Part shown: positions 2,401 through 63,570 of the stretch, one piece after another | Layout: each line of letters opens with the position of its first letter | Numbering within the stretch: position 1 is the first letter of the stretch | NCBI GenBank assembly: GCA_044892525.1 | Contig: CM097886.1 | Span: 6,014,001-6,078,000, forward strand | Direction: 5' to 3' | From: Schmidtea polychroa | Taxonomy: Eukaryota | Length of the DNA: 64,000 nt | The notes under the pieces: generated by a model | Database searches by the model: none | What the model saw: the letters and a program-made list of their open reading frames with translations, nothing else | Told to the model about the DNA's origin: nothing | Made by a program: the position numbers and the translations under genes

Positions 2401-4661
2401 ATACCAATCATATACCAAAAGTATAGGAGAAAGTTTCAAAACAAAACTCTTACATACAGAAATGCAGCAAAGTCTGCCTACAGAAACCAATTACCAAAGG
2501 ATTGGATCTCCCATGGGATAACATGTTTACCGTCATTGAGAGATCACTAGACCTCAAAACATTCAAAATCAACAATAAACAACAATAACAAAATTGTCTC
2601 TGCTGATCGACTGTGAGTTATGTTGGATTTAATTAAGAAATTAATTTATTTCTCTAAATAATTCCAAATTTAATTAACGATTAAAAATAAATCCCATTTT
2701 GTTATACTAACCGGAATCGTGATAAAATAAACTTTTATCCCATAACTTCCCTTTCATTCATACATGTATCTATATAATTATTAATAGGTTATTGCATAAA
2801 AGTTTCCAACTTCATAATTGACCCATTACCTGCCAGATTTTAAAAAATAGTATTTTTTTGCGAAATTACTTTAATATTAATAAGTTATATAGTATAAGCA
2901 ATTTTAATAAAAAAAATTGCAAATTATTATTTTTACATTTAAAAATNNNNNNNNNNNNNNNNNNNNNNNNNNNNNNNNNNNNNNNNNNNNNNNNNNNNNN
3001 NNNNNNNNNNNNNNNNNNNNNNNNNNNNNNNNNNNNNNNNNNNNNNNNNNNNNNNNNNNNNNNNNNNNNNNNNNNNNNNNNNATTGAGACACAATATAAT
3101 ATATATTTAAGGAAACAACCAAAGTTATCGCAGTCTCAAATCTGAATTATGTGCAGGAAGAAATATATGATATTTGACCGTCGTCCCCAGAAAATGGCAT
3201 TGGTCTTTAAGCAAATTTCATTTACAAATTTGTTTATGTTCAAATAAATCTTACTCGTTACAATTGTAATAGGGTTTTGATTTTGTATTTGCTGCCGGAT
3301 AAATATAGCAAACGATACATTGGTCACCTGAACCAATTTGAATTCTTTGCTGAGTGGCCGCTGAATATTCCTGCCCTCGAATAGTCACATAAGGAGTACC
3401 TATGGTGTGAAATTTATCAAGTCATCATTAAACATGGAAATTAGTGAACCATATCTATAATAGCCGGTTCCCATGAATGCATTGCAAAATGAGACACTTA
3501 ATACAAATATTAGTAAAACAAAAACAATCGGTTTCATTTTATGGCTAAATGTATTTTGTTATGAATGCCTTAATATACTTTGCCACAGTCGTTACACATA
3601 TGTTGTTATTTACCCAGGGCGTGCTATGACACAAATGCGTTGATTAGGTCATGGGCTTGAATTATTTATTAATTTTTATGGATTTTCTATTAGTTTTCTA
3701 AACCAGGAATTTTGAGGGTAAATTGTATTAATTTCATCTTCCGCCAATCAGTTTTGTCGTTTTACACAAAATCTATTTTTCTACGAATTAATATAGAATG
3801 GAGGAGTTGTTTCGATTGATTGGAAAGTCTTTTAATGTTGATTATATTATTTATAAAATATAATTAAATGTATTAAGTCGAAAAGAAGGACTGATTCGGG
3901 AGAAAGTTTGCTGGTATATCCTCTGGCTGACAAATCTTCACACCATAATATTACTATTCATCTACAAAATCTTCTTTAATTTCTCTTTTATTTCTTTTAT
4001 TTAATTTATCCGAAATCGTAATTTCTTTAAAATAAGTAAAAGAAAATTTATCAGTAAAGGAAAGTGTGCAAAATGAAAAGTATTGAAGTCCCAACCTTCT
4101 TAGTTTTTTAGAATCACTTTTCAGGGTTTGTTCTAAGACCCGCCTTTTGAATTTTGTCCAGCACCAGGGGCTCCATGTCATATGTTTCTGGTGGTTTGAT
4201 AAAATTTGCAATCGTGGTCGCCATATTACGGTTGATTTCCTATAATAGTCATTAAAAAAAATTCTAATTCTTTTTCAGTCATTATAATCATTTTTTCACT
4301 CAATATAGTCATCAAAAAAAATTAATGTATTTTTATTATTCAATATAGTCAAAAACCAAATCTATTCGAAATACCAAATTTTAACTATCAATTTCAAGCA
4401 TCAAAAGTAGTTTAGAAATATACCTCAAATCTTTACTCTAAAAGTAGCTAGTAAATCAATCTGTTTTAATTCTATTAATATTCTTAGGCATTATGCTTGC
4501 AATACTCGTTCAAAGTCACATTCAAATGTATCTATTGTACAAAGGCCATTCTTTAAAATATCGGGTACAGTTTCTGGGTTCGAAAGAAGTTTTTCAAAAC
4601 TAAAAGAAAGAATATATGTTAGGATTAGGTCAAGATAATTAACGTCTAAATGATTTAAAAT

Positions 4662-5692: not shown

Positions 5693-7782
5693 AAATTAAA
5701 AATAGTATTTAAATATATTTTGAAAAAATTTATAAATAAATAATAAATATAATTGAAAGGGTAGAATTCTCATTGAAATAAAAAGAAAATAAACTGCTAA
5801 TAAACATTTAGATCATAATATCAAAGGATGTAAAACTTTTCGATAAACGTTTCTATAAATTTATAAATATTTAAATTTATACATAGACAAATATCAAATT
5901 TATTTATTTTAGTCGCACCCCACTATACGAACCTAGCATATATATGATGTCCTGCAGTTAGTCCGTGTATTGAGAACCTCGCTTACTAGGACCGGCTCGC
6001 TGAAACATTACATTTTGTTCATAAATCATCTTTCATATTTGCATAATTATCACAATAAAAAGATGGTACAATGAAATATTTATTAAAATAAAATTGAAAA
6101 TTTATTATTAACATTGTGATTTGTATATAACTTTCCCACTTGCAGTCTTTGTCTTAACGGGTCTGAACATTCATTTTAATTATTTTATTTACTTCACCAC
6201 CAAACTTACTCTAGACAGTTGTAGACTGGATTTGGATTATCTTTTCTTGGCTGAATTTTACACAAAATACATTTATCCCCCGTCCCAATCATGAGACTTC
6301 TTTGAGAATCAGCACCATATTCGATTCCACTAATCGTTACATACTGTTTTCCTAAATGAAATGCTTTCTTATTCTGCATTCTAATTCATTAGTTTACCTT
6401 TTCTTACAACTCCAACTCCGGCGAAATCAGACAAAATGGTTGAAATACTCAACAATGTCAACGTCAATATTAATATTAAATTCATGATTTGCAAATCCCT
6501 TGAAGTATGAAATCCTGATATTTCCCAACTTATAAATAGCATGAACTAGAAACATGTGTTGATTCAGCTTATTGTTTAATCTACTCTTCATAAAATATCG
6601 ACCTATTAATATTTTAATCTTTNNNNNNNNNNNNNNNNNNNNNNNNNNNNNNNNNNNNNNNNNNNNNNNNNNNNNNNNNNNNNNNNNNNNNNNNNNNNNN
6701 NNNNNNNNNNNNNNNNNNNNNNNNNNNNNNNNNNNNNNNNNNNNNNNNNNNNNNNNNNNNNNNNNNNNNNNNNNNNNNNNNNNNNNNNNNNNNNNNNNNN
6801 NNNNNNNNNNNNNNNNNNNNNNNNNNNNNNNNNNNNNNNNNNNNNNNNNNNNNNNNNNNNNNNNNNNNNNNNNNNNNNNNNNNNNNNNNNNNNNNNNNNN
6901 NNNNNNNNNNNNNNNNNNNNNNNNNNNNNNNNNNNNNNNNNNNNNNNNNNNNNNNNNNNNNNNNNNNNNNNNNNNNNNNNNNNNNNNNNNNNNNNNNNNN
7001 NNNNNNNNNNNNNNNNNNNNNNNNNNNNNNNNNNNNNNNNNNNNNNNNNNNNNNNNNNNNNNNNNNNNNNNNNNNNNNNNNNNNNNNNNCTCAATGATTC
7101 TCAATCTTTTTGACTTGCGGAGCACTAAATGAATTTTAAATTTTTCATTGCATTTATATTCGTTTTCAAATTTATATTAAAATATTTTTAGTGCAAAAAA
7201 ATAATCATTAAAAACACTCCTAATTTTTCGAATCATCCTACATGAAAAATGTGTGTTCTTTGACAAAAGACAAGATTATTGAGGAAATCAAGGAAAAGAT
7301 TTCTTTTCGATACTCTTTGTATCTTTCTAAGGAATATTTTTGAAAAACATTGAGAACACTTAATAATTAATCCAAACATTCTTCATGAAAAGTTGCGTTT
7401 TAATTACAAATAACAAGAATCTCAAATAAAATCCTCGAAAAGTTTCTTAGTTCTCTTTGGAATTAGGAAAAGATCAAATTAATCGAGGGTTGTCTGTAAT
7501 TACTTTTTTATTATTATTATTTTTTTTATTTTTATTATAATTCTTATAAGACATTAACCCCATACAGCACTTGTGTGAATAGATTTTTCCAGATGTTGTG
7601 ATTGGAATTTCTTTAGAATTTTTCCTTGATCACATAATTGACTACTTGATTCAAAACATTTAAATAAACAGTAGAAAATATTAAGAAACAATTTTATATT
7701 ATCTTTTTCTTTAAATATAACGTAAAACAATTGGTTGTGTCAATATACAGTTCGGTCAGTTTAGGATTCATTAGCTCGTTCT

Positions 7783-10438: not shown

Positions 10439-10861
10439 NNNNNNNNNNNNNNNNNNNNNNNNNNNNNNNNNNNNNNNNNNNNNNNNNNNNNNNNNNNNNN
10501 NNNNNNNNNNNNNNNNNNNNNNNNNNNNNNNNNNNNNNNNNNNNNNNNNNNNNNNNNNNNNNNNNNNNNNNNNNNNNNNNNNNNNNNNNNNNNNNNNNNN
10601 NNNNNNNNNNNNNNNNNNNNNNNNNNNNNNNNNNNNNNNNNNNNNNNNNNNNNNNNNNNNNNNNNNNNNNNNNNNNNNNNNNNNNNNNNNNNNNNNNNNN
10701 NNNNNNNNNNNNNNNNNNNNNNNNNNNNNNNNNNNNNNNNNNNNNNNNNNNNNNNNNNNNNNNNNNNNNNNNNNNNNNNNNNNNNNNNNNNNNNNNNNNN
10801 NNNNNNNAAAAAAATGTAAACAAACTGTCGGTAAACTGAAACGATGAAAATCTTTACTTAC

Positions 10862-26965: not shown

Positions 26966-28582
26966 CCACGATATTATTAAATGTCAGAAAAAACAGACGA
27001 TTTCCAGATTATTTATTTACATTCTTTCAATGAACTTATGCCCAAGCAACATTTCCCATTGTACAGCGTCGCACAGCTATCTTTTTTATAAATAAAAATA
27101 AACTTATATTTAAGTGTCCCGTATTCGTGATTTAGTCGCGCCGGGTGTTTATCAATTCTCTCGGCCCTGTTTCCATTCTTCACTGTTTCTGTAATATTCA
27201 TAATAGACAATCTTTTAACAAGCTGTTGGTTACTTATGGGTGTGTCATTTTTAAAATTTTAAAATATGTTAGGGGTAATCATGGGTATTCACTCGACTCT
27301 TTCCTAAGCACCTCCATGACTATTGTACTTTAAACCATTTGTGTACCCATGGCGACGACCATGTTGGTACTGTACACAAAGGCAAAAAACAATGAGCAGG
27401 TGAGCTCTATTGCTAAAACTACTCCCCATTGTATTTTCTCTTCGGGTTCTAGACTGCCGTTAGAAGGTCTTACGTCATTATTCACTATGTATGCTGTTTT
27501 TAGATTATTTGTGGTCCTCAATTACGGGTATTTCCAATTGTTCTCTTCTAAAATTTTGCGGAGGTATCCACCCTTATTTTCCTACTAATAAATGTTGCTA
27601 GGTATTTTCCTTGATATTTATGAATATTTAACCTATTTTTAAAAAAATTGACAAGGGATCGGCCTTTATTTCCAAGTTAATCCACACTTCCCATAATATT
27701 TAAATTATTCAAAAAATTTGAGCAGGGATCTGTCTGCATTTCTAAGTCTAACCTATTTCCGATCAGAAAATACTTACGGTGACGGACCCGATCAATCCGC
27801 GTGAATCTGAAAAGCCAGCCGACCTACTCGCAAGAGGAACAACTAGTGTCCCTTAAGCTGTGGCCTACTGGATTCCAGCTCCACTATAACTTCTATTCAA
27901 AATTAATTAATGTAAAAGTTGAACCGAATAAAAATTATTATTTAAAAACTTAAAAAGTAAATGAAATCAAACAATTAAAAAGAACAAAAACAAAAAAAAA
28001 TTAACTAAAACTAGATGTAATACAAAGATTTATTAACTTTTAAAAATGTACCTAAAAATTACAAATTAACAAATAAAATTACCACATCCAATACCACGAT
28101 GGCATAAAATCGAAAATTGAGAGCATATGTTCACTGCCTAAAAAACAATGTTGTGTAAATCTGAAAACCAGTTTAACAAGTTGAACAACTGAAATTTCAA
28201 TCCGTATTTATACTGATTGAATTGTACGCCTACGCATTCTCTGCTACTATATCCAATTAGAATGCGAGGCAATTGTGATTAATTTTTGCATACATGCGTG
28301 AATGTGTGCAATTATTTATTTTTAAGATTTATATTTATAAATTCTATATATGAGGAAGTTTTATGATGAAGAAATTTTTAAATTGAAAATTTTAAAAATT
28401 AAAGTTTAGATTAATTTTTAAAAAAACAAAATAAGAAGATATTTTAATAAAAAATATCTTCGTAGAAAATTTGTTTAAATAAGAAAGATTAAAGAAGATA
28501 TAATTTGATTTTGATATTTATTGAAATAAAATTTATGGAAACAAAAACTGATTTTAATGTTTTACAGGATGAACCTCCTAAT

Positions 28583-29625
28583 ATGGTGGCAGCGGTAAAC
28601 ACGGACGCAATCACCGAAAGATTGCTACCAAAGGTATTCTGCCAAGGGGACGATTTGGAAAGGTTCATTAAAAGATGCGAAATTTATTTCGACGCCAAGG
28701 GAATCACGCAGAAGAAAGACCAGGAAAGATTAACATCTTGCATGATTGATGAGGATCTCCTGGAAGTGTACGCCAAAACACTGAAAAAAGCCGAAGGATT
28801 CCAGGCTAGGTTGCGATTGGCATTCGATCGTGAAAGAGATGTTTTAAAGGATCTACAAAACTTGTTGAATTACAAGCGGAAGGGTAAAGAAATAGAAACG
28901 TATTTTAAAAAGGTGGAGGACCTTGTTGATAGGTTGTGCGAAAATAAAGAATTTACCAAAGAGAAATTAACAGCAAGGATGTTAATAGTATGTGCGGAGA
29001 ATAAAGAAGTTGAGAAAGAAGTGATACTACGGAAGATAAAAAGCACAGAAGAGATAAAGGAAACACTAACTCTGATGGACAAAGTAGACAAGCAAAGAGA
29101 GCAGATAAACAGTATGAAAAGTTACGCCAGAGTGGTCTATCAGGAACCACAGGGAAGAGTACAATACAAGAAGAACAGAGAGAAGAAAGTATCCGAAGAG
29201 AAATGCCAGAATGCTGGTTATGTCACAAAATAGAACACACGAAAATTGATTGTCCAATAAAAGGTATAATAGAATGCTGGACATGTCATAGAAGCGGACA
29301 TATAAGTAGAAACTGTCCAGATAAAAAAGCTCCAAGATGTTTTGGGTGTGGGAAAGAAGGTCATATAAGAAGATTGTGTCAGGAAATACGTTGTGAAAGA
29401 TGTAGCAGAAATGGTCATAGATCCGAGGAGTGTTATACAAAGATGAGGTACGGGAGAGCGACGGAGACACAAAGATTCACGGGAAACAGATACAGTCGGA
29501 TAAATGGTATCGAGGAAGAAGAAGAAAGGGAATCGTGTGTAGAGACAAATGAAGATAATTTTAGGAAGACGTACCCAAACAACAGGGCTCCACCAGTAGA
29601 GGAGTTGGTTGGAGCCATATTCTAA
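28583..29625 (+). CDS. gag: Gag of the compact gypsy element, split by one frameshift; four CCHC zinc knuckles
   Basis: ATG at 28583 gives MVAAVNTD..FIKRCEIYF (capsid-like); -1 frame ORF 29203-29625 holds CWLCHKIEHTKIDC, CWTCHRSGHISRNC, CFGCGKEGHIRRLC and CERCSRNGHRSEEC. Confidence 0.85.
29574..29616 (+). promoter_or_regulatory. Putative -1 programmed ribosomal frameshift signal (gag-pol)
   Basis: In-frame C CCA AAC heptamer, 5-nt spacer, then hairpin GGCTCCA(29586-29592)/TGGAGCC(29610-29616); pol is in the -1 frame and open from this point. Confidence 0.75.
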
Positions 29626-29633
29626 CAGAAAAT

Positions 29634-32600
29634 TTGATGGGATATCCTCAAGGGGCAGAAAAGTGGGAGAAAGTATACAGGTTCCTAAAGAGAGAAATGT
29701 TTGAAGAGGAAGTGGAAAGAATTGGAACCATTGAAACGGAGCAGGTTGTTGAAATTTTGTATAACAGAATGCAAGGAAGGCCTAGTATAACAGTAAGGAT
29801 GAATGGGGAAAATTTCGACTGTTTATTAGACACTGGAGCAAGAATCAATATATTGAGTGTGATCTGTTTCAAGAAGCAACGAGGACAACAATTGACGAAA
29901 AGTGACGATAAGTTACGATTCGCAAACGAGAGTACGATCGAGACAATAGGAAAAACGAAGGTGCAAGTAACCATTGGAAATGTTTCGAAGGAAGTTATAT
30001 TCATTGTGGCGGAGGAAGTGACACCAGACGTGATTGGAGGAATCGAATTTCAAGAAACATTTGGATTTAGACTGTTAAAAATTAAAGATATCGAGGCTAG
30101 TGAAAAAGACAAGAACTATATTTGTAACATTGAAGCAAAATTTGGCAGAAAAATAAGGGATGAAGAACGATTGATACGAGCGTTGGAGCAGTTAAAGATC
30201 AATGAAGATAGCAAATTAAAGGAAATTATAACAAACAGTGGAAACGTGTTTATGGCAGATAAATGGGATGTGGGTCGCACACATTTGGTAAAACACAAGA
30301 TAGTTACAAGAGGTGAGCCGATAAACATAAAACCATATCGCCAACCACTAAATTTGGAATCAAAGATTGAAGAAGCAATACAAAATTTGTACGAAAATGG
30401 AATTATACGGAAATGTAACTCTCCATGGAATACACCGCTAATATGTGTATGGAAAAAAGAGAAAAAGGATATTAGACTATGCTTAGACTTTAGACAGTTG
30501 AACGCGGTAACAGAGAGGCAGGCATTTCCAATGCCAAACATAGACGAGATGTTGGATTTGTTAGGAGGATCCGTCTTTTTCAGCTCAATCGATCTAGGTA
30601 ATGCATATTACCAAGTCGAACTAGAAGAAGAATCACAGGAGAAAACAGATTTCTCAACAAAGAACGGACAATATTGTTTCAACAGAATGCCGTTTGGAAT
30701 TGCAGCAGCACCAGGTACGTTCCAAGAAATGATGACAAAAGTATTAGGCAAAATAAAGGGAGAAATGGTGTATTTGGACGACATCTTGATTTATTCAAGC
30801 AGTAAAGAGAAACACTATACAATACTCGGAGAAGTGTTAGAGGCGATTGAGGAAGCAGGCCTAAGGATTAATCCAGAAAAATGCCAAATAATAAAGGAAG
30901 AAATCAGATCCTTAGGACACATAATCAGCAAGGAAGGAGTACAGACAGATCCATCTAAAATTCAGGCCATACAGAACTTTGGGAAGCCTAATTGCGTAAA
31001 GAAACTCCGAAGCTTTTTAGGTATTTGCAATTATTATAGAAGATTCATCAGTGATTATGCAAAGAAGGCAAGGATGTTAGAACAATTATGTAGCGGACCA
31101 AGTAACAAAAAATTAGAATGGAGTGAAGGAACGAATAGCGTGTTTGAGGGATTGAAATTAGCACTCACGACGGCGCCAATCTTATGTTTTCCGGATCTGA
31201 AAAAGGAGTTCATTTTAGATACCGACGCTAGTTTCGATACCATTGGAGCAGTACTTTCACAAAGAGATAAAGATGGAAAGGAAAGAGTAATTGCGTATGG
31301 ATCACACTCGATGACGAGCCACAAGAAAGGATATTGTATTACAAGAAAGGAACTATTGGCGGTATATTATTTTTGCATTCATTTTAAGAACTATCTCTAC
31401 GGAAGAAGATTCACGCTCAGGACAGACCACAAGGCAATCACGTTTATGATGACAACCAAGAAGCCGATTACTTCACAATTCCAAACATGGATCAATTATT
31501 TGAGCAGTTTAGATATAAGAGTAGAATACAGAAAGGGTATTAATCACCAAAATGCAGACATGGTGTCGAGAACTAAATGTGACACGTGTGTTCAATGTCA
31601 AATGGCCCACGAAGAAGCTAAGAAAGGAAAGATAAAAACAAGATTACTAGACTCGATCAGAGAAGAGGGAAGAAGCAACATTCAACATGGAATTGTAGAA
31701 GAAGTACGAAAGAAAACGATGATACCTGAAAATGAGTTACAAGAAACAATAAAGGAAATACATAGACTATTGTGTCATGCTGGAGTCGAGAAGATAGCCG
31801 ATTATATGAAAGATAGATATATTGGAAAACACCTGTGGAGTAAGATTCAGGAGATTGTTCGAAGTTGTGAGATTTGTCAAAAAACCAAGGCTTTAACAAT
31901 AACAACGAAAGAACCAGTAAAAAGACAAGATTCGAAGGAAATGTTCGAAATTATATTCGTGGATATATGTGGACAGTTGGCAGAAACAAAAGGACGTAAG
32001 AAGTATATATTGGGCATAATAGATCAGTATAGTAAGTATCAAGTCTTGACAGCGATAACAAAACAAGACGAAGAAACAATAAAGAAAACGATTTTAGAAA
32101 AGTGGATTTTAAGATTTGGATGCCCAAAGGAGATAAGAGCTGATTGCGGAAAGGCGTTTGAATCAGGAATGATGAGAGAATTCACAAAGATGCTAGATAT
32201 TAAATTATGTTTATCGAGTCCATACCATCACCAAACAAACGGTCAGATAGAAAGGCAATTCCGGACAATACGGGATTTGATAAATGCTACTTTACAGGAT
32301 AGAAAGAAGACGGATTGGGCAGAGATATTACCAGAAGTCGAATTCACTTTAAATGCAACCAAACAAAAAACGACAGGGAAAAGCCCGGCAGAGATAGTTT
32401 TTGGAAAAAAGATAAGCAGGGAAAAATGGTACGGGTCCAAAGAAATACCGATAAAGGAAGAACTAGAAGAACAAACAAGGAGAAAATTCAATGTAGGAGA
32501 AGAAGTATTAGTAAAAGTAGAAACACGCCACAAAGGCCAGGACAGGTATGAAGGTCCGTACAAAGTGATAGAGAAAGTGCATGACAGACGATACATCTTA

Positions 32601-32672
32601 AGAAATGAAGATGGAAAAAGGATCGAAAGAAATGTGGAAAAACTTAAAAATTTCTTAAGAAGGGGGATATGA
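29634..32672 (+). CDS. pol: Pol polyprotein (protease-RT-RNase H-integrase), uninterrupted
   Basis: LLDTGA (protease), YLDD (RT), ILDTDAS (RNase H), H..CHAG..CEIC, D-D-E and GPY motifs (integrase); gypsy domain order; no chromodomain. Confidence 0.95.
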   Translation: MMGYPQGAEKWEKVYRFLKREMFEEEVERIGTIETEQVVEILYNRMQGRPSITVRMNGENFDCLLDTGARINILSVICFKKQRGQQLTKSDDKLRFANESTIETIGKTKVQVTIGNVSKEVIFIVAEEVTPDVIGGIEFQETFGFRLLKIKDIEASEKDKNYICNIEAKFGRKIRDEERLIRALEQLKINEDSKLKEIITNSGNVFMADKWDVGRTHLVKHKIVTRGEPINIKPYRQPLNLESKIEEAIQNLYENGIIRKCNSPWNTPLICVWKKEKKDIRLCLDFRQLNAVTERQAFPMPNIDEMLDLLGGSVFFSSIDLGNAYYQVELEEESQEKTDFSTKNGQYCFNRMPFGIAAAPGTFQEMMTKVLGKIKGEMVYLDDILIYSSSKEKHYTILGEVLEAIEEAGLRINPEKCQIIKEEIRSLGHIISKEGVQTDPSKIQAIQNFGKPNCVKKLRSFLGICNYYRRFISDYAKKARMLEQLCSGPSNKKLEWSEGTNSVFEGLKLALTTAPILCFPDLKKEFILDTDASFDTIGAVLSQRDKDGKERVIAYGSHSMTSHKKGYCITRKELLAVYYFCIHFKNYLYGRRFTLRTDHKAITFMMTTKKPITSQFQTWINYLSSLDIRVEYRKGINHQNADMVSRTKCDTCVQCQMAHEEAKKGKIKTRLLDSIREEGRSNIQHGIVEEVRKKTMIPENELQETIKEIHRLLCHAGVEKIADYMKDRYIGKHLWSKIQEIVRSCEICQKTKALTITTKEPVKRQDSKEMFEIIFVDICGQLAETKGRKKYILGIIDQYSKYQVLTAITKQDEETIKKTILEKWILRFGCPKEIRADCGKAFESGMMREFTKMLDIKLCLSSPYHHQTNGQIERQFRTIRDLINATLQDRKKTDWAEILPEVEFTLNATKQKTTGKSPAEIVFGKKISREKWYGSKEIPIKEELEEQTRRKFNVGEEVLVKVETRHKGQDRYEGPYKVIEKVHDRRYILRNEDGKRIERNVEKLKNFLRRGI

Positions 32673-33750: not shown

Positions 33751-35378
33751 TAGGGTTTCACGACCAATTTAATAATATTTGCAACCAATTTCATAATTTC
33801 TCGTTCAATTTCATAATTTTTGCAATCAATTCCATAATTTTTGCAATCAAATTCATAATTTCCCGACCAATTTAATAACTTTTGCAATCAAATTCATAAT
33901 ATTTGCAATCAATTTCATAAAAAAATCCTTATTTTTAATTTAAAAAATATTTTATTAAACCCCTATGTCAAATTCAATTTTCAATTCAAACTTAGAAGAG
34001 GACATAGAAGAACCAAGTTCCGAGGAGCGAAATCATACAAACGTTTCTTTGATGTTGGCAACCCCTACAAACACAGCGTTCGCCTCTCCTGTCGCGGAAG
34101 AAACCGGCATACCTAGGAAGATAAATGTAAGTATTTCGGCTAATGATAGAGAGCGGATTATTACAAAGACATTGGAAGGGCATTCGGTAGCAGCGATATC
34201 CTCCATGTACAGCATTAAATATCAAACTGTAAATAGTATTGTTAAAAAATACTTAAAAACTGGTATAATATTTGAGGAAAAGAGTGGCGGTGATAAGCGC
34301 TCTAAGCTTCCAGAGCACGTAAAAGAGGCTCTCATGAGAAACGTTAATGAGGAGTGTACTAAAAGCCTCAAAGATATGAAGAAGTGGATACAAAGCAGTT
34401 TCGGAATCAATGTTTCGATCAGTACCGTCGATCGTGCGCTTTGCCAGTTTCATTACACACTGAAACGCGTGACATTGGTACCTGAACGTCGAAATTGTAG
34501 TTCGACAATTGAGATCCGAGCCATTTATGCAAGCATGTTACGAACCTTAGAAATTGAAAGTGATGATAAAAATTTTGTCTTCCTCGATGAAGTTGGATTT
34601 GCGGTGGTAACACGCCCATCTCGTGGAAGAAGCTCCAAAGGATCATCGCCCTATCTCTCTGTGCCGGCTGCAAGAAGCAGAAATATTTCTGTCGTTGCTG
34701 CAATGAACAAATACGGTATGATCTACCATAAAATCCAGGAAAGAGCTGTTAATGGTGAAGATTTTAAAACATGCTTAAAAGAAATCCATGATTGCTGTAT
34801 TCGCTTAGGAATAGTTTCCCCCATCTTTATAATGGATAATGCCCGCATACATCATTACAGGGGGTTGATTGATGACGCAGAAATATTGTCCTATGGGATA
34901 CAATACCTTCCGCCTTATTCTCCGTTTTTGAACCCCATCGAAAACGTGTTTTCCGTTTGGAAAAATTGTGTCATTCGCAGCAATGCGCGCACTGAAGCAG
35001 AATTAAGAAGCAATATTACCGACAATTTTTATCAAATAACACCTGAACATTGTGCTTCTTTTTATCGAAAAATGCTTAAATATTTACAAAAAGCGGAGTT
35101 AAGACTGGAGATTCTTGAATAGTAAATCTTTAGCTTGAAATTTTTTAAGAATATTTTTTATATTTATAAAATATATTTATATAATTGGTGTTTATTTTTT
35201 AATTTTTTTTATGAAATTGATTGCAAATATTATGAATTTGATTGCAAAAGTTATTAAATTGGTCGGGAAATTATGAATTTGATTACAAAAATTATGGAAT
35301 TGATTGCAAAAATTATGAAATTGAACGAGAAATTATGAAATTGGTTGCAAATATTATTAAATTGGTCGTGAAACCCTA
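33751..35378 (+). mobile_element. Intact IS630/Tc1-mariner superfamily DNA transposon (1628 bp)
   Basis: About 174-bp near-perfect TIRs (33751-33924, 35204-35378) starting TAGGGTTTCACGACC, TA duplication, single ORF inside. Confidence 0.95.
33965..35122 (+). CDS. DD34E transposase, IS630-like
   Basis: HTH N-terminus; FLDEVGF, MDNARIHH and LPPYSPFLNPIE, with 34 residues between the second D and the E. Confidence 0.95.
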   Translation: MSNSIFNSNLEEDIEEPSSEERNHTNVSLMLATPTNTAFASPVAEETGIPRKINVSISANDRERIITKTLEGHSVAAISSMYSIKYQTVNSIVKKYLKTGIIFEEKSGGDKRSKLPEHVKEALMRNVNEECTKSLKDMKKWIQSSFGINVSISTVDRALCQFHYTLKRVTLVPERRNCSSTIEIRAIYASMLRTLEIESDDKNFVFLDEVGFAVVTRPSRGRSSKGSSPYLSVPAARSRNISVVAAMNKYGMIYHKIQERAVNGEDFKTCLKEIHDCCIRLGIVSPIFIMDNARIHHYRGLIDDAEILSYGIQYLPPYSPFLNPIENVFSVWKNCVIRSNARTEAELRSNITDNFYQITPEHCASFYRKMLKYLQKAELRLEILE

Positions 35379-38218: not shown

Positions 38219-39053
38219 TGAATAATCTAGAAATGGAGATAAACAGATTTATCAGACTGGCTAATTAACAAAGACGATTGATGTTAAATTTTTGTTGGTA
38301 ACCTCACAACCGAAATAAATTTTGAAAATCGGGTTGTAATCCTTGATATAGCATGAGAAACGCAAAATTCCATTCGGCAGTTGAGTTTGTCTAATTTGCG
38401 GCTGATTATTGAGTTCATCTGAAAGAACAGACACCAACAATTGATAATAAAGATGCCAACGTAAGGGATCCATTCACTATTTATTAGCATTCATTAATTG
38501 TCATAAATAGTTAAGAAATTATTAATCGATTGCCAGTACATGGATAATGGAATTATAATCGCCAATGAATACATCCGAATAAAAAAAACAAATTATCCAT
38601 TAAAACAAACGGTGTTGTTAGGAAATACACACAGACAGTTGTGCATGTCACACACAAACACGATGAGAATTTTCTCTGCCTGTGCAAGTGAGTTGATTTC
38701 GTTGCCAGTGATACAGGAAAATTTGATTTAATTTTCACAGAATTAAAGAATCATCACTCTCCACTGTCATTTGGAGAGCGCGTGTATTTAAAGTTCACTG
38801 TGACTGCATGTATCGATTCCCCTTCTCTTGGGAGATGTGTTACAGTTATTAAGATTAAATTGTTAAAGCACATTTCAAGAAGCTTTCTTACTTACTATCT
38901 TTTTGGTGTGCGTTGGAGTTTGTATGTATTGACTGTCCTGTGCAATCAACTAATCTTCAATTCCAGATCGACGACAATGACTGTTCATGTTTAAATTCAA
39001 GATCACGAATAATAATTTTATTTTTGAATAATAACAATTTGTCCATGTCAATA

Positions 39054-39509
39054 TCAATAAGATAATGCCATCATTGAACAACCTAATGGTCGCATCTCAG
39101 TTGATTGCGTAGAAAGCTGCTTAATATCCGCGATAGACCGACATATTATGTCGCAAGGCATTTCATATCCATGTTTATATCTACATCGAGCTGCTTCCAT
39201 TTGTGCACGACATACTTGAGATCGATAATCAGGGATCATACCAGTCATAACACCTCCAGTACTTTCAGTAATATTAAACAATCTTGTAGCTGAACTCTTC
39301 TCAATCATTTTATCTGGAACCTTTCTTTGTGTAGCTACTACATCACAATTATTGCATCGAATACCAACGGACATCCATCCACCAAATAAATTTAATATTA
39401 GTTGGCCAAAAACACCATTAACATTATCAGATTCATAAATTTCTTCATTAAAAGCAGCCATCATTAACAACTCTTTCCTTAAATCGAAACATAACTCATT
39501 CCAATACAA
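39054..39509 (-). CDS. PSMA6: Proteasome alpha subunit (PSMA6/alpha1-like) fragment ORF within the 3' LTR
   Basis: Residues 43-151 (39057-39383) align gap-free with recalled human PSMA6 ([42 protein letters not shown]), about 60/109 identical. Expression unproven. Confidence 0.85.
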   Translation of the reverse strand: MYWNELCFDLRKELLMMAAFNEEIYESDNVNGVFGQLILNLFGGWMSVGIRCNNCDVVATQRKVPDKMIEKSSATRLFNITESTGGVMTGMIPDYRSQVCRAQMEAARCRYKHGYEMPCDIICRSIADIKQLSTQSTEMRPLGCSMMALSY

Positions 39510-39898
39510 TCGATCGATAAAAATCTAAATCTAAAAATCAAATTACAACAAAACTAATTAATAAAATTGACATACCTATTGCTCGCGTCTGTGTGCGCAC
39601 ACAGCCAAAAACAAAGAAAAGAAAAGCGCACACAGACGCGAGATCAACTAACAACCCAAACACAAAAATGACATTGCTCGCGTCTGTGTGCGCACACAAA
39701 CCCATCACACAATACAACACGCACACAGACGCGCATTGAGCTCATAATTCACCATCCTCCCCCCCTTGACACCTTAGTGTCAATCTCAAATCCCCATCAG
39801 CTTCTCCTTCTTCTTTTATACTCAAACATAATTTGAAGATACATTCCAGTGTCAGTTTATCCCTTCTCCCCTCCATTTTCTGCATTTCCCTCGCCATT

Positions 39899-42799
39899 TT
39901 ATCCCTTTCCCCCTTCATTTCCTGCATTATGGCTCAATCTCCAATAACCCTCACACACCCATCTTTGTATTATATAAGCCGCTGCACCACGCACCTTTTT
40001 TGAAAGATCATTGTGGATTCTCCACCCACCATCGCTATAATCGGCCAAGCAGCTGTTCCTGTTCAGTTTGTTTAGGTGTAATCTCTCCATTATTATTTCT
40101 CCATTTTTCGCCAATTCCATATTCCACACTTTTCCCTGTTGCCTTTCATTTAGTGACCAGTTTTCACTTAATGTTTTTATATGCATCCTACAAAGTCGTT
40201 CTTTGATTGCTTCGTGTTTCGATTCCCCAATCGACACCTCGTCTTTCATGTGCATCTTTAGAGGCGTGCAAGCGAGTTCCAGTGATCCTTGTTGTTTGAA
40301 ACTGTTCGATGATTCGTTCAATTTTTCCAAAACTTCTTTGGCCCCTTGATCATTATCACGTACAGTTTCCCATGATTTTCCATATACCATACTGGTCTCT
40401 TTGTTTTGCCTCTCCCCTCTGGAGTCTTCTGCCCCTTTTACATTATCACGTTCTTCTTTTAATCGATTAACTTCCCCTTCGTCGACCTGCATATCATTAA
40501 CCGCCGCCTCGGGCGTTAAATCCTCTGATTCTGGTTTGTCTTTTTCCCAATTACTCATCACTTCCGTTGTCTTCGGTTCCACAATTTTATCGTCGGATAA
40601 TTTTATGATCTCACCAGCCCGGCAAGCCTCATCTTGCTTTTCCCCTGTATTCATTTTTCCTTGAACATTTTGTCTGATTGTCATAACGTTAACTAATTCG
40701 TTAGTTCTTCCAGAATTGAATATTTGCTCATCTAAATGACTCTGAGCTCCTTGCTCTTCATTAGATGCCTTACTCCTGTCGAGTGGCGTGTCCTCAATTC
40801 CTCGAGATGCCCGTAACTCGTCATTGAACATTTCAGTTACCGCAAAATAACTCTGAACCGTCCTCATTGATGCGTTTTCATTTAATAATTCGTTGTGTCT
40901 TTGCTTACATCCGGTAACCTTGCAGAAAGATTCTTTACGACATTCCTTGGCCATGTGATTTCTTTTGAAGCAATTCCTGCACAGTTTCTTTTCTTCGATG
41001 ACTCTCTTCCTTTCTGAAATTGTGAGTTGCTTAAACTTGTCACATTGGTCTAGGTAATGTTGAACACCACATTGTACACATCCTGATCTATAGCCGTTAG
41101 AGTTATTCACCTGTATAACCGTCCCACTTTTAACTCTGCCATCTGGTTGCCCCGTAAAATGCGTCCAACCTCCTGGATTGAAGCTTTCTCTTTCTCTAGA
41201 CACACCTTCTACTCTTGACACATCATAAGCCCTGGTGCATGGTTGAGTCCCATACACGACCTCGTTAGTGGACCTTAGGATCTCCGCTTCTTGTTGTATC
41301 CATCTTCTCAAATCCTCTATCGTCTCCCGCAATTCCTTTTCTATTTTCTCTTTCTTCCATTTATACACAAGATCCGTTGTCAACTTGCCCAAACACTTTT
41401 GAAAAAGATATCCAAGCTTTAACTCGGATTCTTTTCCAGTGGATTTAAATCGCACGGTGACTGTTTCTAATAATCCAACAAATAAGTCTAGATCCTTCAA
41501 ATCTCCTTCTCGAATTGGCCTGAACTGTTCCATCTCCTCTAACATTGATAAATATATCCTTTCATCCCCGCCATATCGCCTATCCAACTTCTCTTTTGCC
41601 ATTTGATAGGCCTCTGCCGAATATCCTAGATTTTCAATTAACTTTAATGGCTCTCCGTGAAGGTACTTGTGCAGGTGAAACATCTTTTCAACCTCATCAC
41701 CTTCCGCTTCGTCAACACACGCCGTTAAAGCTGCTTTCCATGGTTCGTACTCTTTCATCTTGCCTTCAAAGACAGGTATTGTAATTTTCTGTAGACTTTC
41801 CAGTTTTCTTTTATGCACGGAATTATTCTTCTTGATTGTATCATCATTCACCTTTTCCTTCTTTTCCATAAAAGATTGATTTGCCTTTCTTTCCATCAAT
41901 GCCCCAATTATTTGATGTTTTCCCTCGATCTCTTGCAGGTCTTTATCTAAAATTGCAGTGATGTCCAATCTTTGCAATTTGTTACTGATCGTTCTTAGAT
42001 CTATTAATTCTTCATCTAGACTCTCCTTTTGATCTTCATATTCCTCCAACCATTTGCTAACATCCTTACCCTTTATATCATTCAGAATCTTGTTTCTCAA
42101 TCTCGTTGATCTTCCTTTTTTCATTCTCTTTTTCCACAATTCTTCTTCTAAAATCTCTCCGTCATTGCCACAGCACAGCCTGAGTGACAAATGAAGTGTC
42201 GAACCTACTTGTAAGCTATAATCATTCAATCTTCTTTTATTTTCTAACTGCTTTCCTGCGTATACTAACATTTGACAATTTTCCGGAATTCCTTCTTTGT
42301 CCTGGATTTTTCCTTTTACCTTTTCAATTGTGCCGTTCCATTCAACGTTAAGAGTAATTGTCTTACCAGTAAGAGTTTTGACAAATATTTGATATATACT
42401 TCCCCATCGCAACTCAAAACCCATTACCCCGCTCGCCCTCACCCTTGACTTAGCTCTGTTCTTTACCCTGTTCCCCTGGCTTCCCCCTTTAAAAGAGTGC
42501 TGGGGCCCATAGCAGCACTTTCCCACGCTCGGTAGGGAAGGGAGGATGATTAATTTTACAAAAATAAAATTCAAATAAATGAAAATAAAATTTACATTAC
42601 CCTTGATGATTAATTTTACAAAAATAAAATTCAAATAAATGAAAATAAAATTTACATCACCCTTGATCAGCCGGGGCTGTCTCCACTGAAACATTGGTGC
42701 GTAGCCCCCTGAAGGGAACCACGCTCTGCTACCATGTTCATGTTTAAATTCAAGATCACGAATAATAATTTTATTTTTGAATAATAACAATTTGTCCAT
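39899..42799 (-). CDS. Ubiquitin-like domain fused to BEL/Pao Gag (966-aa ORF; alternative start 42424)
   Basis: Ub at 42167-42394 (52/76 identical to ubiquitin, ends LRLCCG); DUF1759-type Gag ([34 protein letters not shown]); three Cys/His knuckles [37 protein letters not shown]. No protease, RT or integrase motifs. Confidence 0.92.
42546..42668. repeat. 60-bp tandem duplication in the element leader
   Basis: Two near-identical 60-bp units encoding IKG(D/N)[16 protein letters not shown] in frame. Confidence 0.9.
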
Positions 42800-42806
42800 G
42801 TCAATA

Positions 42807-43262
42807 TCAATAAGATAATGCCATCATTGAACAACCTAATGGTCGCATCTCAGTTGATTGCGTAGAAAGCTGCTTAATATCCGCGATAGACCGACATATT
42901 ATGTCGCAAGGCATTTCATATCCATGTTTATATCTACATCGAGCTGCTTCCATTTGTGCACGACATACTTGAGATCGATAATCAGGGATCATACCAGTCA
43001 TAACACCTCCAGTACTTTCAGTAATATTAAACAATCTTGTAGCTGAACTCTTCTCAATCATTTTATCTGGAACCTTTCTTTGTGTAGCTACTACATCACA
43101 ATTATTGCATCGAATACCAACGGACATCCATCCACCAAATAAATTTAATATTAGTTGGCCAAAAACACCATTAACATTATCAGATTCATAAATTTCTTCA
43201 TTAAAAGCAGCCATCATTAACAACTCTTTCCTTAAATCGAAACATAACTCATTCCAATACAA
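42807..43262 (-). CDS. PSMA6: Proteasome alpha subunit (PSMA6-like) fragment ORF within the 5' LTR
   Basis: 151-aa translation identical to 39054-39509. Confidence 0.85.
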
Positions 43263-43625
43263 TCGATCGATAAAAATCTAAATCTAAAAATCAAATTACA
43301 ACAAAACTAATTAATAAAATTGACATACCTATTGCTCGCGTCTGTGTGCGCACACAACCAAAAACAAAGAAAAGAAAAGCGCACACAGACGCGAGATCAA
43401 CTAACAACCCAACACAAAAATGACATTGCTCGCGTCTGTGTGCGCACACAAACCCATCACACAATACAACGCGCACACAGACGCGCATTGAGCTCATAAT
43501 TCACCAATGACAAAGATGAGACATCGAAAATGAATTGAACAGCCCAGCAAAACAACTAACACCAAAGCTCTGTCGTATTTATTTCTGTGTTTAAGTTGTT
43601 AACCTGAAATTTTCTATCCCACTCT

Positions 43626-43943
43626 AATTATTTTTCGGTTTCCGATTTTATTTCTTTTGGTCTGAAATAAGAATTCTCTATTGTTGCCATAGTTGCTAAT
43701 TTGTTTGACTAAACTAATTTAAATGCTTGTCTGAATAAATAAAGAACATTTCCATCGAGATCAAATGATCACACAATTCAATTATTTTTCGGTTTCCGAT
43801 TTCATTTCTTTTGGACTGGAATAAGAATTCTCTATTGTTGCCATAGTTGCTAATTTGTTTGACTAAACTTATTTAAAAGCTTGTCTGAATAAATAAAGAA
43901 CATTTCCATCGAGATCAAATGATCACACAATTCAATTATTTTT
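43626..43943. repeat. 154-bp tandem duplication
   Basis: Units start at 43626 and 43780 and differ by a few substitutions. Confidence 0.9.
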
Positions 43944-61304: not shown

Positions 61305-61579
61305 TGTTGCATTTATGACAATAGTAATTATCTGTATTAATTGTAGCCATTAAACAAATTTAAAAAATTTTATTTTTCAAAAACTCACAAAAACTTACAA
61401 AATTCAAACAACTGATATAAAAATCCATAACTATTTCAGCTAAACATATCAAAACCGAATCACAAAATTAAAATTCGATATAACTCGACAATTGTCCGCG
61501 TCTGTGTGCGCATACAAATCAATCCAATGTCAAAGCAAAAAACGCACACAGACGCGAAACATAAACTCACAATTCACCA
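61305..61579 (-). mobile_element. Short solo LTR related to the PSMA6-bearing LTRs
   Basis: Same end AATTCACCA, same CGCGTCTGTGTGCG..CGCACACAGACGCG hairpin, TGTTGCAT start; AAGTC at 61298-61302 and 61580-61584 (TSD offset by 2 bp on the left). Confidence 0.65.
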
Positions 61580-62646
61580 AAGTCGCAAACAAGCTTTTAT
61601 AATTGTATTAAATTAATAATTGTTAAACTCGATTAATTTGCATTCTTATTTACTTAATCAAATACTAATATACTGAATTGATTAACATGTTAATTTAAAC
61701 AAATAATTATATCCGTATTATTACAATAAGTTTGAGACATCATTAATAGGTGATCATAGATAAACTGAGAAATTTAAAAATAAAAAAATTTTAAAGAAGT
61801 TTATAAAATTCAAAATAATTATAAAAATATTGCAATCCATGAAAAGTAATTATCAAAATCAAATAAAATAAAATACATATTTCAACATTTTATCTATTTT
61901 ATATTTTGATTTATTTTTATTTTACCGTATAGATAAACCTATTAGGAAACCTTTAATAAAATGTATTTTTCTAAAATTTTAATTGTTCTATGAATAAAAG
62001 AATCAAATCATGGTTGTGATGTTATATTATATATAGAATAAGAATTAAGAAAGTTTCTAAAATAATATTTATTAAAATTTAAAATTTAAGTCAGCACTTT
62101 TCTGATATTATTTAAACAATAATTAATATGACTAACATTATTTTAATATAATAATACCATACACAAATATGGGGTAAATCGTCAGCCTATGTCTATTTTA
62201 CGCTATAATACTAGAGAATAACTTTAATAAATTATAAAAAATAACCAGATTTTTATTAGAAACATATAACGAAAAGTTTTTCTAAGAATTTTAATTAGAT
62301 TCAATTTTTAAACACGGTCCAGTTGGCACAATTAACACTAATGACCCTTTAAGGACATTATAGTTCTGACAAGATATTCTAAATTGTGTTTTGTGAATTT
62401 AGTGCAATCATTAATGTTTCATGTCATTATAAATACCATGGACATTTAAAAATAATTTATTAACACGAACGGTTCCTTCTTGAGAGAAATTGCTCATAAT
62501 ATTAGTATCTAATAAACCTAGGCTGTTATTTTTTAAGTATTTAATTTAACATTTTACTGTGCTCGCTTATGATTTAGTGCATTTGTCATTGCGTGCTTTA
62601 GTTTGAGTATCATAGAATAAAAATTAATTTTTTTATTAAAAATCAC

Positions 62647-63570
62647 CTTGAAAAACTCGCTGAAACTATGAGGTTTAAGTGATTGACTGTGATAAGTGTT
62701 TCTTTTCATAAGGCTTGAATTTTCTTCATCTGATCCAAATGAAAAGTCTGATGAGTCATCTTCGCCTGATTTTGTCGAAATTATACTGCCTTGTTCTTTG
62801 GCTTTTGCCATGTCTTCTTTGCGTTTTAATGTTTTTTCTCTACGCAATTGGTCCTTGTAATAATCGGCAAAATTGTTGACAATTATCGGAATCGGTAAGG
62901 CAATAACGAGGACACCACATATACAACAAAATGAACCCACAAATTTCCCCAATGCTGATTCTGGTACCATATCTCCATAACCCACTGTTGTCATTGTGAT
63001 AATGGCCCACCAAAATGTTGCTGGAATACTGATAAATTTTCCACCTTCATCTTTCTCGGCAAAATAAATTAAACTTGAGAATAGTAATACACCTAAGGCT
63101 ATGAACATAACCAACATTCCAAGTTCTTTATAACTTTTCTGAAGAGTGTATCCTAACGCTTGCAAACCGGTTGAATGACGAGCTAACTTCAATATTCTCA
63201 AAACTCGCAAAATTCTGAACACTTGAATAACTTTTCTCATAGAATCCAATGACTGGGTCAGATGGTGAAAATAATTCGTAAAGATTACTGAAATGTAATA
63301 AGGAAAAATAGCTAAAATATCAATCATATTCATCGGGGATTTGAGGAAATTCTTTTTGTTGGGACAAGAAAATAATCGACAAACGTATTCGAATGTAAAC
63401 CAGGTTATGCAAATGGTTTCGATTCTATCCAAAAGATGCGTTTCATTTCCATTAGTTTGAGTTGAATTTGATGCAAATGTAATGTTACTAGCTCCTCCAA
63501 ATTCAGTCGTACCTATCACCAGGCAGATTATGGAAATGAGGATAAATAAGACCGACATGACAGCAATAAT
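62647..63570 (-). CDS. Shab: Voltage-gated K+ channel Kv2/Shab, S1-S6 exon (T1 exon outside window)
   Basis: [19 protein letters not shown] (S4), TMTTVGYGD (pore), [11 protein letters not shown] (Kv2-specific S6); AG acceptor at 63571-63572, AAG|GT donor at 62647. Confidence 0.93.

Follow-up and report, generated by a model that had tools for sequence, protein, structure and literature searches.

The closest described relatives of the element reported here are the BEL/Pao retrotransposons (Belpaoviridae), an example of which is Sinbad from Schistosoma (listed as reference 72 of PMC11592408). The element occupies positions 38982–43506, on the minus strand, of a 64,000-nucleotide stretch of Schmidtea polychroa DNA (GenBank assembly GCA_044892525.1, contig CM097886.1, positions 6,014,001 to 6,078,000 of the forward strand); the whole of this stretch is called the window below. 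With BEL/Pao members it shares TG...CA long terminal repeats (LTRs), a short target-site duplication, a primer-binding site (PBS), a polypurine tract (PPT) and a Gag protein with a DUF1759 domain and Cys/His knuckles, and its closest protein relatives carry Pao peptidase A17, reverse transcriptase (RT) and integrase. It differs from them in that the window copy is without protease, RT and integrase and in that its Gag starts with ubiquitin. Our reading, to which a probability of roughly 0.6 is given, is that this is a recent non-autonomous BEL/Pao (Belpaoviridae-type) derivative, that its ubiquitin is old and has been selected in the Gag lineage, and that the remaining pieces of host origin are passengers.

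The maize element Bs1 (PMC13317346) is likewise non-autonomous, has kept gag and holds several host gene pieces in a hybrid frame. In the window element the corresponding pieces are ubiquitin, PSMA6 residues 35–141 and dynein residues ~1244–1449, all of them host-derived, intron-free, colinear with their sources and in sense orientation. Unlike Bs1, it belongs to an animal BEL/Pao lineage and not to a plant, one of its fragments lies inside the LTR and is hence duplicated, and its relatives carry alternative sets of fragments (SNF8, HSP90). Replication-defective transducing retroviruses make fusion proteins of Gag and host sequence. As in these, Gag is in frame with a piece of a spliced host messenger RNA (mRNA), pol has been lost and the element depends on a helper; unlike these, it is an endogenous retrotransposon rather than an infectious virus and there is no sign that its dynein piece functions.

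Ubiquitin fusions are known from ribosomal ubiquitin-fusion genes, polyubiquitin, the ubiquitin inserts of cytopathic pestiviruses and baculovirus v-ubi. The element resembles these natural and viral fusions in that a full 76-residue ubiquitin stands directly before its partner and in that most lineages end in the diglycine, but the partner is a retrotransposon Gag or Gag-Pol, and G75 has been lost in the window copy. Ubiquitin and Gag are connected through budding, late domains and turnover; in the Gag cases known to us, the ubiquitin is added by the host. In the present case the ubiquitin is encoded by the retrotransposon lineage, as a fusion to Gag, and has been retained under selection. 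Full-text literature searches did not turn up a BEL/Pao Gag described as fused to ubiquitin; their coverage was incomplete and the result is absence of evidence only, and within this limit the suggestion of the original prediction that the architecture is undescribed still holds. An analogy may be drawn with the N-terminal 2A peptides of non-LTR retrotransposons (PMC3708506), which are also short N-terminal modules separating a protein from upstream translation, although they would act by ribosome skipping instead of protease cleavage and belong to a different element class. With the ubiquitin–Gag lineage, the effect of ubiquitin on a capsid protein can be studied in a natural setting. Host mRNA fragments have, moreover, been captured repeatedly in this family of animal LTR retrotransposons, into the LTR as well, a type of process best documented in plants. 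In genome annotations, elements of this kind can make the ubiquitin, proteasome and dynein gene families look larger than they are.

Structure and age of the element

The minus-strand unit is complete and runs LTR–PBS–open reading frame (ORF)–PPT–LTR. Its boundaries and non-coding features are as follows.

43507–43511, no strand: target-site duplication GTCAT, upstream side in the minus-strand reading (read from the sequence)
42735–43506, minus: 5' LTR, 772 nt, TG...CA (repeat search and alignment to the 3' LTR)
43296–43506, minus: 5' part of the LTR, containing a pair of ~95-nt units whose GC-rich hairpin stems are perfect over 16 bp (RNA fold z-score -5.3)
42719–42734, minus: PBS-like sequence TGGTAGCAGAGCGTGG, 16 nt, starting with TGG, directly after the 5' LTR (read from the sequence)
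42545–42664, minus: leader with a 60-nt tandem duplication (repeat search, family D4)
39755–39767, minus: PPT AAGGGGGGGAGGA, 13 nt, directly before the 3' LTR (read from the sequence)
38982–39754, minus: 3' LTR, 773 nt (repeat search and alignment)
38977–38981, no strand: target-site duplication GTCAT, downstream side (read from the sequence)

The LTR pair was found by a repeat search as two direct copies ~3.75 kb apart. Both LTRs start with TG and end with CA, the pair of hairpin units is also present in the matching part of the 3' LTR, and alignment of the two (772 versus 773 nt) gave two substitutions and one single-base indel. The insertion is recent, because only two substitutions separate the LTRs over 772 nt. 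The original prediction had described a complete unit with a 5-bp target-site duplication and about three LTR differences, and had taken it to have transposed recently; all of this is borne out. The PSMA6 fragment is identical in both LTRs of this copy, which is flanked by its target duplication, so that transposition followed the capture. The 16 nt of the PBS also adjoin an LTR end in a related contig (L004); the 64-kb window contains no tRNA gene by which the primer might be identified.

Three further observations concern LTRs or the flank. At approximately 61491–61579 (minus strand) there is an LTR-like start, TGGTGAATT.TGAG, with one copy of the 16-bp hairpin unit, ~75% identical; this is probably what remains of a related LTR. 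Immediately beyond the element, at 43626–43933, the sequence carries a 154-nt tandem duplication. In the related contig L007 the five bases after an LTR-like end (...GAACA, positions 660–675) are GTCAT, as in the target duplication in the window, and unrelated sequence comes next; the match may reflect either a target-site preference or chance.

The coding features of the internal region are the following.

39899–42799, minus: long ORF of 966 residues, open from an ATG within the LTR (ORF listing)
42167–42394, minus: ubiquitin domain, 76 codons, C-terminus RLCCG and not RLRGG (Pfam, E 2.8e-21)
41771–42166, minus: N-terminal region of Gag, helical and coiled-coil-like (AlphaFold, three long helices with a predicted local distance difference test score, pLDDT, >90)
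41348–41770, minus: capsid-like domain of Gag, DUF1759 (Pfam, E 2e-10)
40901–41071, minus: Gag region with Cys/His zinc knuckles (zf-CCHC scores weakly, under the Pfam cut-off; the motifs align with those of relatives)
40082–40628, minus: fragment of cytoplasmic dynein-1 heavy chain, in frame with Gag (solved-structure search, E 3.7e-14)

This is the sole long ORF of the element and it contains no internal stop; its order is ubiquitin, Gag, dynein fragment, with the dynein in the place usually taken by pol. The long ORF had been described as ubiquitin fused to BEL Gag; both domains were recovered with Pfam, but the dynein fragment that makes up the last ~230 residues had been overlooked. In an AlphaFold model of Gag, calculated from an alignment of 54 relatives (mean pLDDT 85), three long helices at the N-terminus are followed by a compact domain made up entirely of helices, a disordered linker and the knuckle region. 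Its best fold matches in the PDB were retroelement capsids, PNMA2 (E 0.017, probability 1.0), Arc, Copia and dArc1, all of these matches having E >0.001. As modelled, Gag is apparently intact. No BEL protease, RT or integrase was detected in the element or in the whole 64-kb window (Pfam; full-length BEL polyproteins match Gag only), in agreement with the original prediction that pol is absent, and the element is a non-autonomous derivative and not a complete BEL/Pao member. With protease, RT and integrase lost, its copying must therefore presumably rely on the proteins of an autonomous relative; since pol is absent, the need for such a partner, as originally proposed, stands.

Ubiquitin in the Gag lineage

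With the portion of the ORF after ubiquitin as query, HMMER gave 8693 relatives, mostly BEL/Pao Gag proteins, the long ones among them carrying Peptidase_A17, RT and integrase. Ubiquitin-bearing relatives were drawn from the best 150 cluster representatives (50%-identity clusters). Six of these (P0128, P0129, P0177, P0237, P0243 and P0225), which trace to five or more ENA and JGI samples and to a single UniParc entry, have ubiquitin directly before the same Gag. Together with the window copy they make up at least seven diverged BEL/Pao Gag lineages with ubiquitin at the same junction, their Gags being just 26–46% identical to that of the window. A basic motif that is conserved in the N-terminal helix of Gag follows the junction at a distance of a few residues. 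Relatives without ubiquitin align through this helix, and the N-terminal helical region as a whole aligns with relatives of both kinds. In the related contig L002 ubiquitin, Gag, the knuckles and a protease-like region all lie in a single frame that stays open up to the contig end; ubiquitin therefore also heads autonomous-type polyproteins. An autonomous BEL partner, which it had been proposed to look for, was found neither in the window nor by the collection scans given below.

The residues just upstream of ubiquitin look like the end of a preceding ubiquitin repeat and therefore suggest a polyubiquitin mRNA as the source. Ubiquitin would then probably have been taken once from such an mRNA and kept across the Gag lineage. 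The original prediction had counted ubiquitin and PSMA6 as two independent captures from the ubiquitin–proteasome pathway and had seen selection in this; ubiquitin is shared by at least seven lineages and was not captured by this element, and the argument fails. What is left of it, and of greater interest, is the ubiquitin, a conserved component of a retroelement Gag.

Scans of metagenome, viral and prokaryote-genome collections gave no matches, whether with the Gag protein, with an alignment of three sequences, with the LTR/PBS junction or with a 32-mer from the PSMA6 piece, and exact look-ups of ORFs of the window gave no record. In protein searches the whole ORF returned mostly polyubiquitins, and the Gag region by itself one Priapulus BEL protein only. 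A 1380-residue BEL/Pao Gag-Pol that is Gag-related and without ubiquitin was observed on a 64-Mb chromosome (L008; GCA_026914265.1, CP111025.1).

The ubiquitin of the window copy is identical to the canonical repeat at 52 of 76 positions, covers positions 1–71 of the 72 of the Pfam profile and has K29 and K48. Six element ubiquitins could be aligned across all 76 codons with no indel, and the residues kept among them are listed here.

Invariant columns: 19, all equal to canonical ubiquitin
G76: kept in 6/6
G75: kept in 5/6, the window copy being the exception
L73, K11 and K27: kept in 6/6
K48: kept in 5/6
K63: kept in 3/6
V70: kept in 1/6
H68: kept in 3/6
L8: kept in 5/6
Position 44: stays hydrophobic

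Pairwise comparison of five of the ubiquitins at the DNA level gave proportions of nonsynonymous differences (pN) of 0.21–0.39 and of synonymous differences (pS) of 0.73–0.96, the synonymous sites being saturated. Judged by these comparisons, the ubiquitin fold and its C-terminal tail are under long-term purifying selection across lineages.

The C-terminal tail of ubiquitin is what deubiquitinases need. L73 is kept throughout and G75-G76 is present in five of the six full-length family ubiquitins; a cleavable module is therefore our preferred reading for the ancestral and autonomous elements. Host deubiquitinases would cut the ubiquitin off and free a Gag with a defined N-terminus regardless of where upstream translation had begun, and cleavage would also release a free ubiquitin variant. 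That the ubiquitin is a module cleaved in this manner, with release of both Gag and the free variant, is a tentative proposal that we hold at a little under even odds.

The window copy itself departs from this pattern. Its ubiquitin ends in RLCCG, lacks the C-terminal RGG of a cleavable ubiquitin fusion and is probably not cleavable, as the original prediction, with its reference to non-cleavable fusions, had implied; that of its nearest relative, P0129, ends in RLKEG. To judge from these tails, ubiquitin probably stays attached in the sub-lineage of the window copy and P0129. With K29 and K48 present, an uncleaved ubiquitin would tend to destabilize the Gag that carries it. Of the features of a ubiquitin-fusion-degradation (UFD) degron, the replacement of G75 and the presence of K29 and K48 were found in the window copy, yet at least 11 residues precede its ubiquitin.

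Host-derived fragments and alternative explanations

The features and substitution ratios of the host-derived fragments are given below; ratios of nonsynonymous to synonymous change (dN/dS) were calculated by the method of Nei and Gojobori.

42807–43262, minus: 151-residue ORF in the 5' LTR, first ATG at codon 16 (ORF listing, Pfam)
42816–43136, minus: PSMA6-derived fragment in the 5' LTR, sense, no intron (Pfam Proteasome, E 7.7e-23)
39063–39383, minus: PSMA6-derived fragment in the 3' LTR, within ORF 39509–39054, identical to the 5' LTR copy
PSMA6 fragment, window versus L001: dN/dS 0.38, 20 changes, p=0.05
PSMA6 fragment, window versus L007: dN/dS 1.1, 5 changes
Dynein fragment, window versus L004: dN/dS 0.67, 30 changes, not significant

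The LTR ORF matches positions 4–111 of the 189 of the Pfam Proteasome profile, and its best match among solved structures is proteasome alpha type-6, residues ~35–141 of 246 (E 2e-36). The PSMA6 piece thus covers 43% of the subunit and is preceded by 42 unrelated residues; the nearest PSMA6 proteins, from the flatworms Fasciola and Macrostomum, are 54–56% identical to it and make a flatworm host likely. A PSMA6-like ORF had been predicted in each LTR and is present there, though as residues ~35–141 only, and its interpretation as a working proteasome alpha-6 subunit was rejected for this reason. The dynein piece is colinear with two stretches of the cytoplasmic dynein-1 heavy chain, ~1244–1302 and 1347–1449.

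Related contigs show the same kinds of fragment in other arrangements. In L004 an LTR end and the identical PBS are joined directly to the dynein piece, with no ubiquitin–Gag between them, and the contig matches the window from 40628 to 39956 at 92.5% identity over ~690 nt. By this comparison it is a shorter deletion derivative without ubiquitin–Gag. Its interpretation as a host dynein exon was rejected, since the contig begins with the LTR end and PBS and its score against dynein is not above that of the window piece. L001 and L007 are variant LTRs that belong to this family and are 91–97% identical to the PSMA6 piece of the window; L007 also matches the upstream LTR segment (77%) and has an LTR-like end. 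In both of them the start of the PSMA6 piece is replaced by a fragment of SNF8, a component of ESCRT-II (endosomal sorting complex required for transport II; Pfam EAP30, E 2.3e-9; SNF8 residues 114–195), and L007 is without the remainder of the PSMA6 piece. L003 carries an HSP90 fragment in frame before ubiquitin–Gag. The PSMA6-like frame of L001 contains one stop, and the dynein-like frame of L004 contains one stop and one in-frame insertion.

All of the host fragments are partial domains, without introns and in sense orientation, and the PSMA6 and dynein pieces have the appearance of passengers derived from spliced host mRNAs. According to a review of such events, routes of capture include transduction and abnormal template switching from one co-packaged RNA to another, the plant element Bs1 being an example (PMC13317346). 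Template switching is proposed here because the fragments are partial, intron-free and sense-oriented, as such capture would yield: RT switching templates between co-packaged RNAs would most likely have picked up the pieces, which would then have been copied along with the element, and the SNF8 and HSP90 pieces of the relatives would share this origin. PSMA6 had been put forward as a capture selected for its pathway. Its fragment contains a stop or is truncated in relatives, its dN/dS is not clearly below 1, and alongside ubiquitin the family carries four or more fragments from different pathways (PSMA6 being one, and dynein, SNF8 and HSP90 others), which speaks against capture from a single pathway. 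The dN/dS check suggested at the time had a divided outcome, with purifying selection on ubiquitin across relatives and no clear selection on PSMA6 (0.38 and 1.1).

Several observations weigh against our reading. A neighbour-joining tree of 109 Gag domains did not resolve a clade of ubiquitin-bearing members, and a single capture of ubiquitin is proposed on the basis of the shared junction. The relatives are short metagenome contigs, and no autonomous BEL/Pao partner was found within the 64-kb window or by the collection scans. The weak synonymous excess in PSMA6 against L001 (p=0.05) makes some constraint on that piece possible. There is, in addition, no in-frame ATG between the upstream stop and ubiquitin in L002 (positions 1–80), L006 (260–380) and L010 (130–210). 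Codon 1 of ubiquitin is ATA or ATT and not ATG in L002, L003 and L006, L010 has a Met directly after the diglycine, and no splice acceptor upstream of ubiquitin is conserved among the relatives inspected. The flatworm spliced leader can donate an AUG. Non-AUG initiation, splicing or a spliced leader giving the AUG are possible ways in which ubiquitin might be translated in L002, L006 and L010. In the window copy the frame is open back into the LTR, and the ATG at 42424, 11 codons before ubiquitin residue 2, is the probable start codon as far as the sequence allows this to be judged.

The main alternative for the role of ubiquitin, and the idea put forward in the original prediction, is that it acts while attached to Gag, as a signal for ESCRT (in place of a late domain), for proteasome receptors or for UFD, and so tunes turnover, trafficking or release. 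Ubiquitin fused to retroviral Gag can substitute for a late domain, and a non-cleavable N-terminal ubiquitin is a UFD degron. This would suit the window copy and P0129, neither of which has the diglycine, and would agree with the retention of K48 in five and of K11 and K27 in all six of the aligned ubiquitins, of L8 in five and of a hydrophobic residue at position 44. An uncleaved signal, on the other hand, needs neither L73 nor G75-G76, which are kept in five of the six despite saturated synonymous divergence; the canonical binding patch is only loosely conserved (V70 in one of six, H68 in three of six), and neither an envelope gene nor a need to bud is evident. We regard a role in the attached state as unlikely, at about one chance in four. 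That the whole structure is non-functional, either a decaying chimeric pseudo-element or an assembly artefact with ubiquitin as one more passenger, might be suspected from the absence of pol, the tandem duplication in the leader and the loss of the diglycine in the window copy. The 5-bp duplication, the three LTR differences and the intact PBS and PPT nevertheless mark a real recent insertion, independent contigs from other samples repeat the LTR-end/PBS junction and parts of the LTR at 91–97% identity, the 966-codon frame is open, and ubiquitin is under purifying selection across lineages; we consider this explanation very improbable.

It might also be held that capture was not random and that pieces of proteostasis and trafficking factors (ubiquitin, PSMA6, HSP90, SNF8/ESCRT-II and dynein) interfere with host control or with competing elements. 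The pathways of these five proteins all handle retroviral Gag, and all five fragments are sense-oriented and mostly in open frames; the PSMA6 comparison with L001 (dN/dS 0.38, p=0.05) points the same way. Partial domains such as PSMA6 35–141, SNF8 114–195 and a ~200-residue slice of the 4646-residue dynein are, however, unlikely to fold, stops or truncations occur in relatives, the dN/dS values of dynein (0.67) and of PSMA6 against L007 (1.1) are higher, and L004 retains the dynein piece without any Gag. Chance is also plausible, since ubiquitin, HSP90 and proteasome mRNAs are abundant and the dynein mRNA is very long, and an enrichment test would need more than five fragments. We accordingly regard interference by selected pieces as improbable. 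The same low standing is given to a combined version, according to which ubiquitin is a permanent part of Gag while the non-autonomous offshoots preferentially collect proteasome alpha-6, HSP90, SNF8 and dynein as decoys or regulators; if true, it would amount to a retroelement toolkit directed at the host pathways that handle Gag.

Other features of the window

The window is AT-rich and contains three runs of N, at 2947–3082, 6623–7089 and 10439–10807. A 1012-codon frame at 29634–32672 (plus strand) encodes protease, RT, RNase H and integrase of the Ty3/gypsy type, with an ORF at 28505–29233 upstream of it, and the pol of this element is apparently intact. It was considered as the autonomous partner of the BEL/Pao derivative and rejected because it belongs to a different superfamily. 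A 385-codon ORF at 33965–35122 (plus strand) has a helix–turn–helix and a DDE_3 domain and corresponds to a Tc1/mariner-type transposase. At 62554–63558 (minus strand) lies an intron-free ion-transport ORF (Pfam Ion_trans, E 6e-49), within which positions 62872–62985 (minus strand) match the potassium-channel RNA editing signal of Rfam over its full length (RF00485, 73 bits, E 5.6e-13); this is likely to be a Shaker-type channel gene in which the editing hairpin is conserved.

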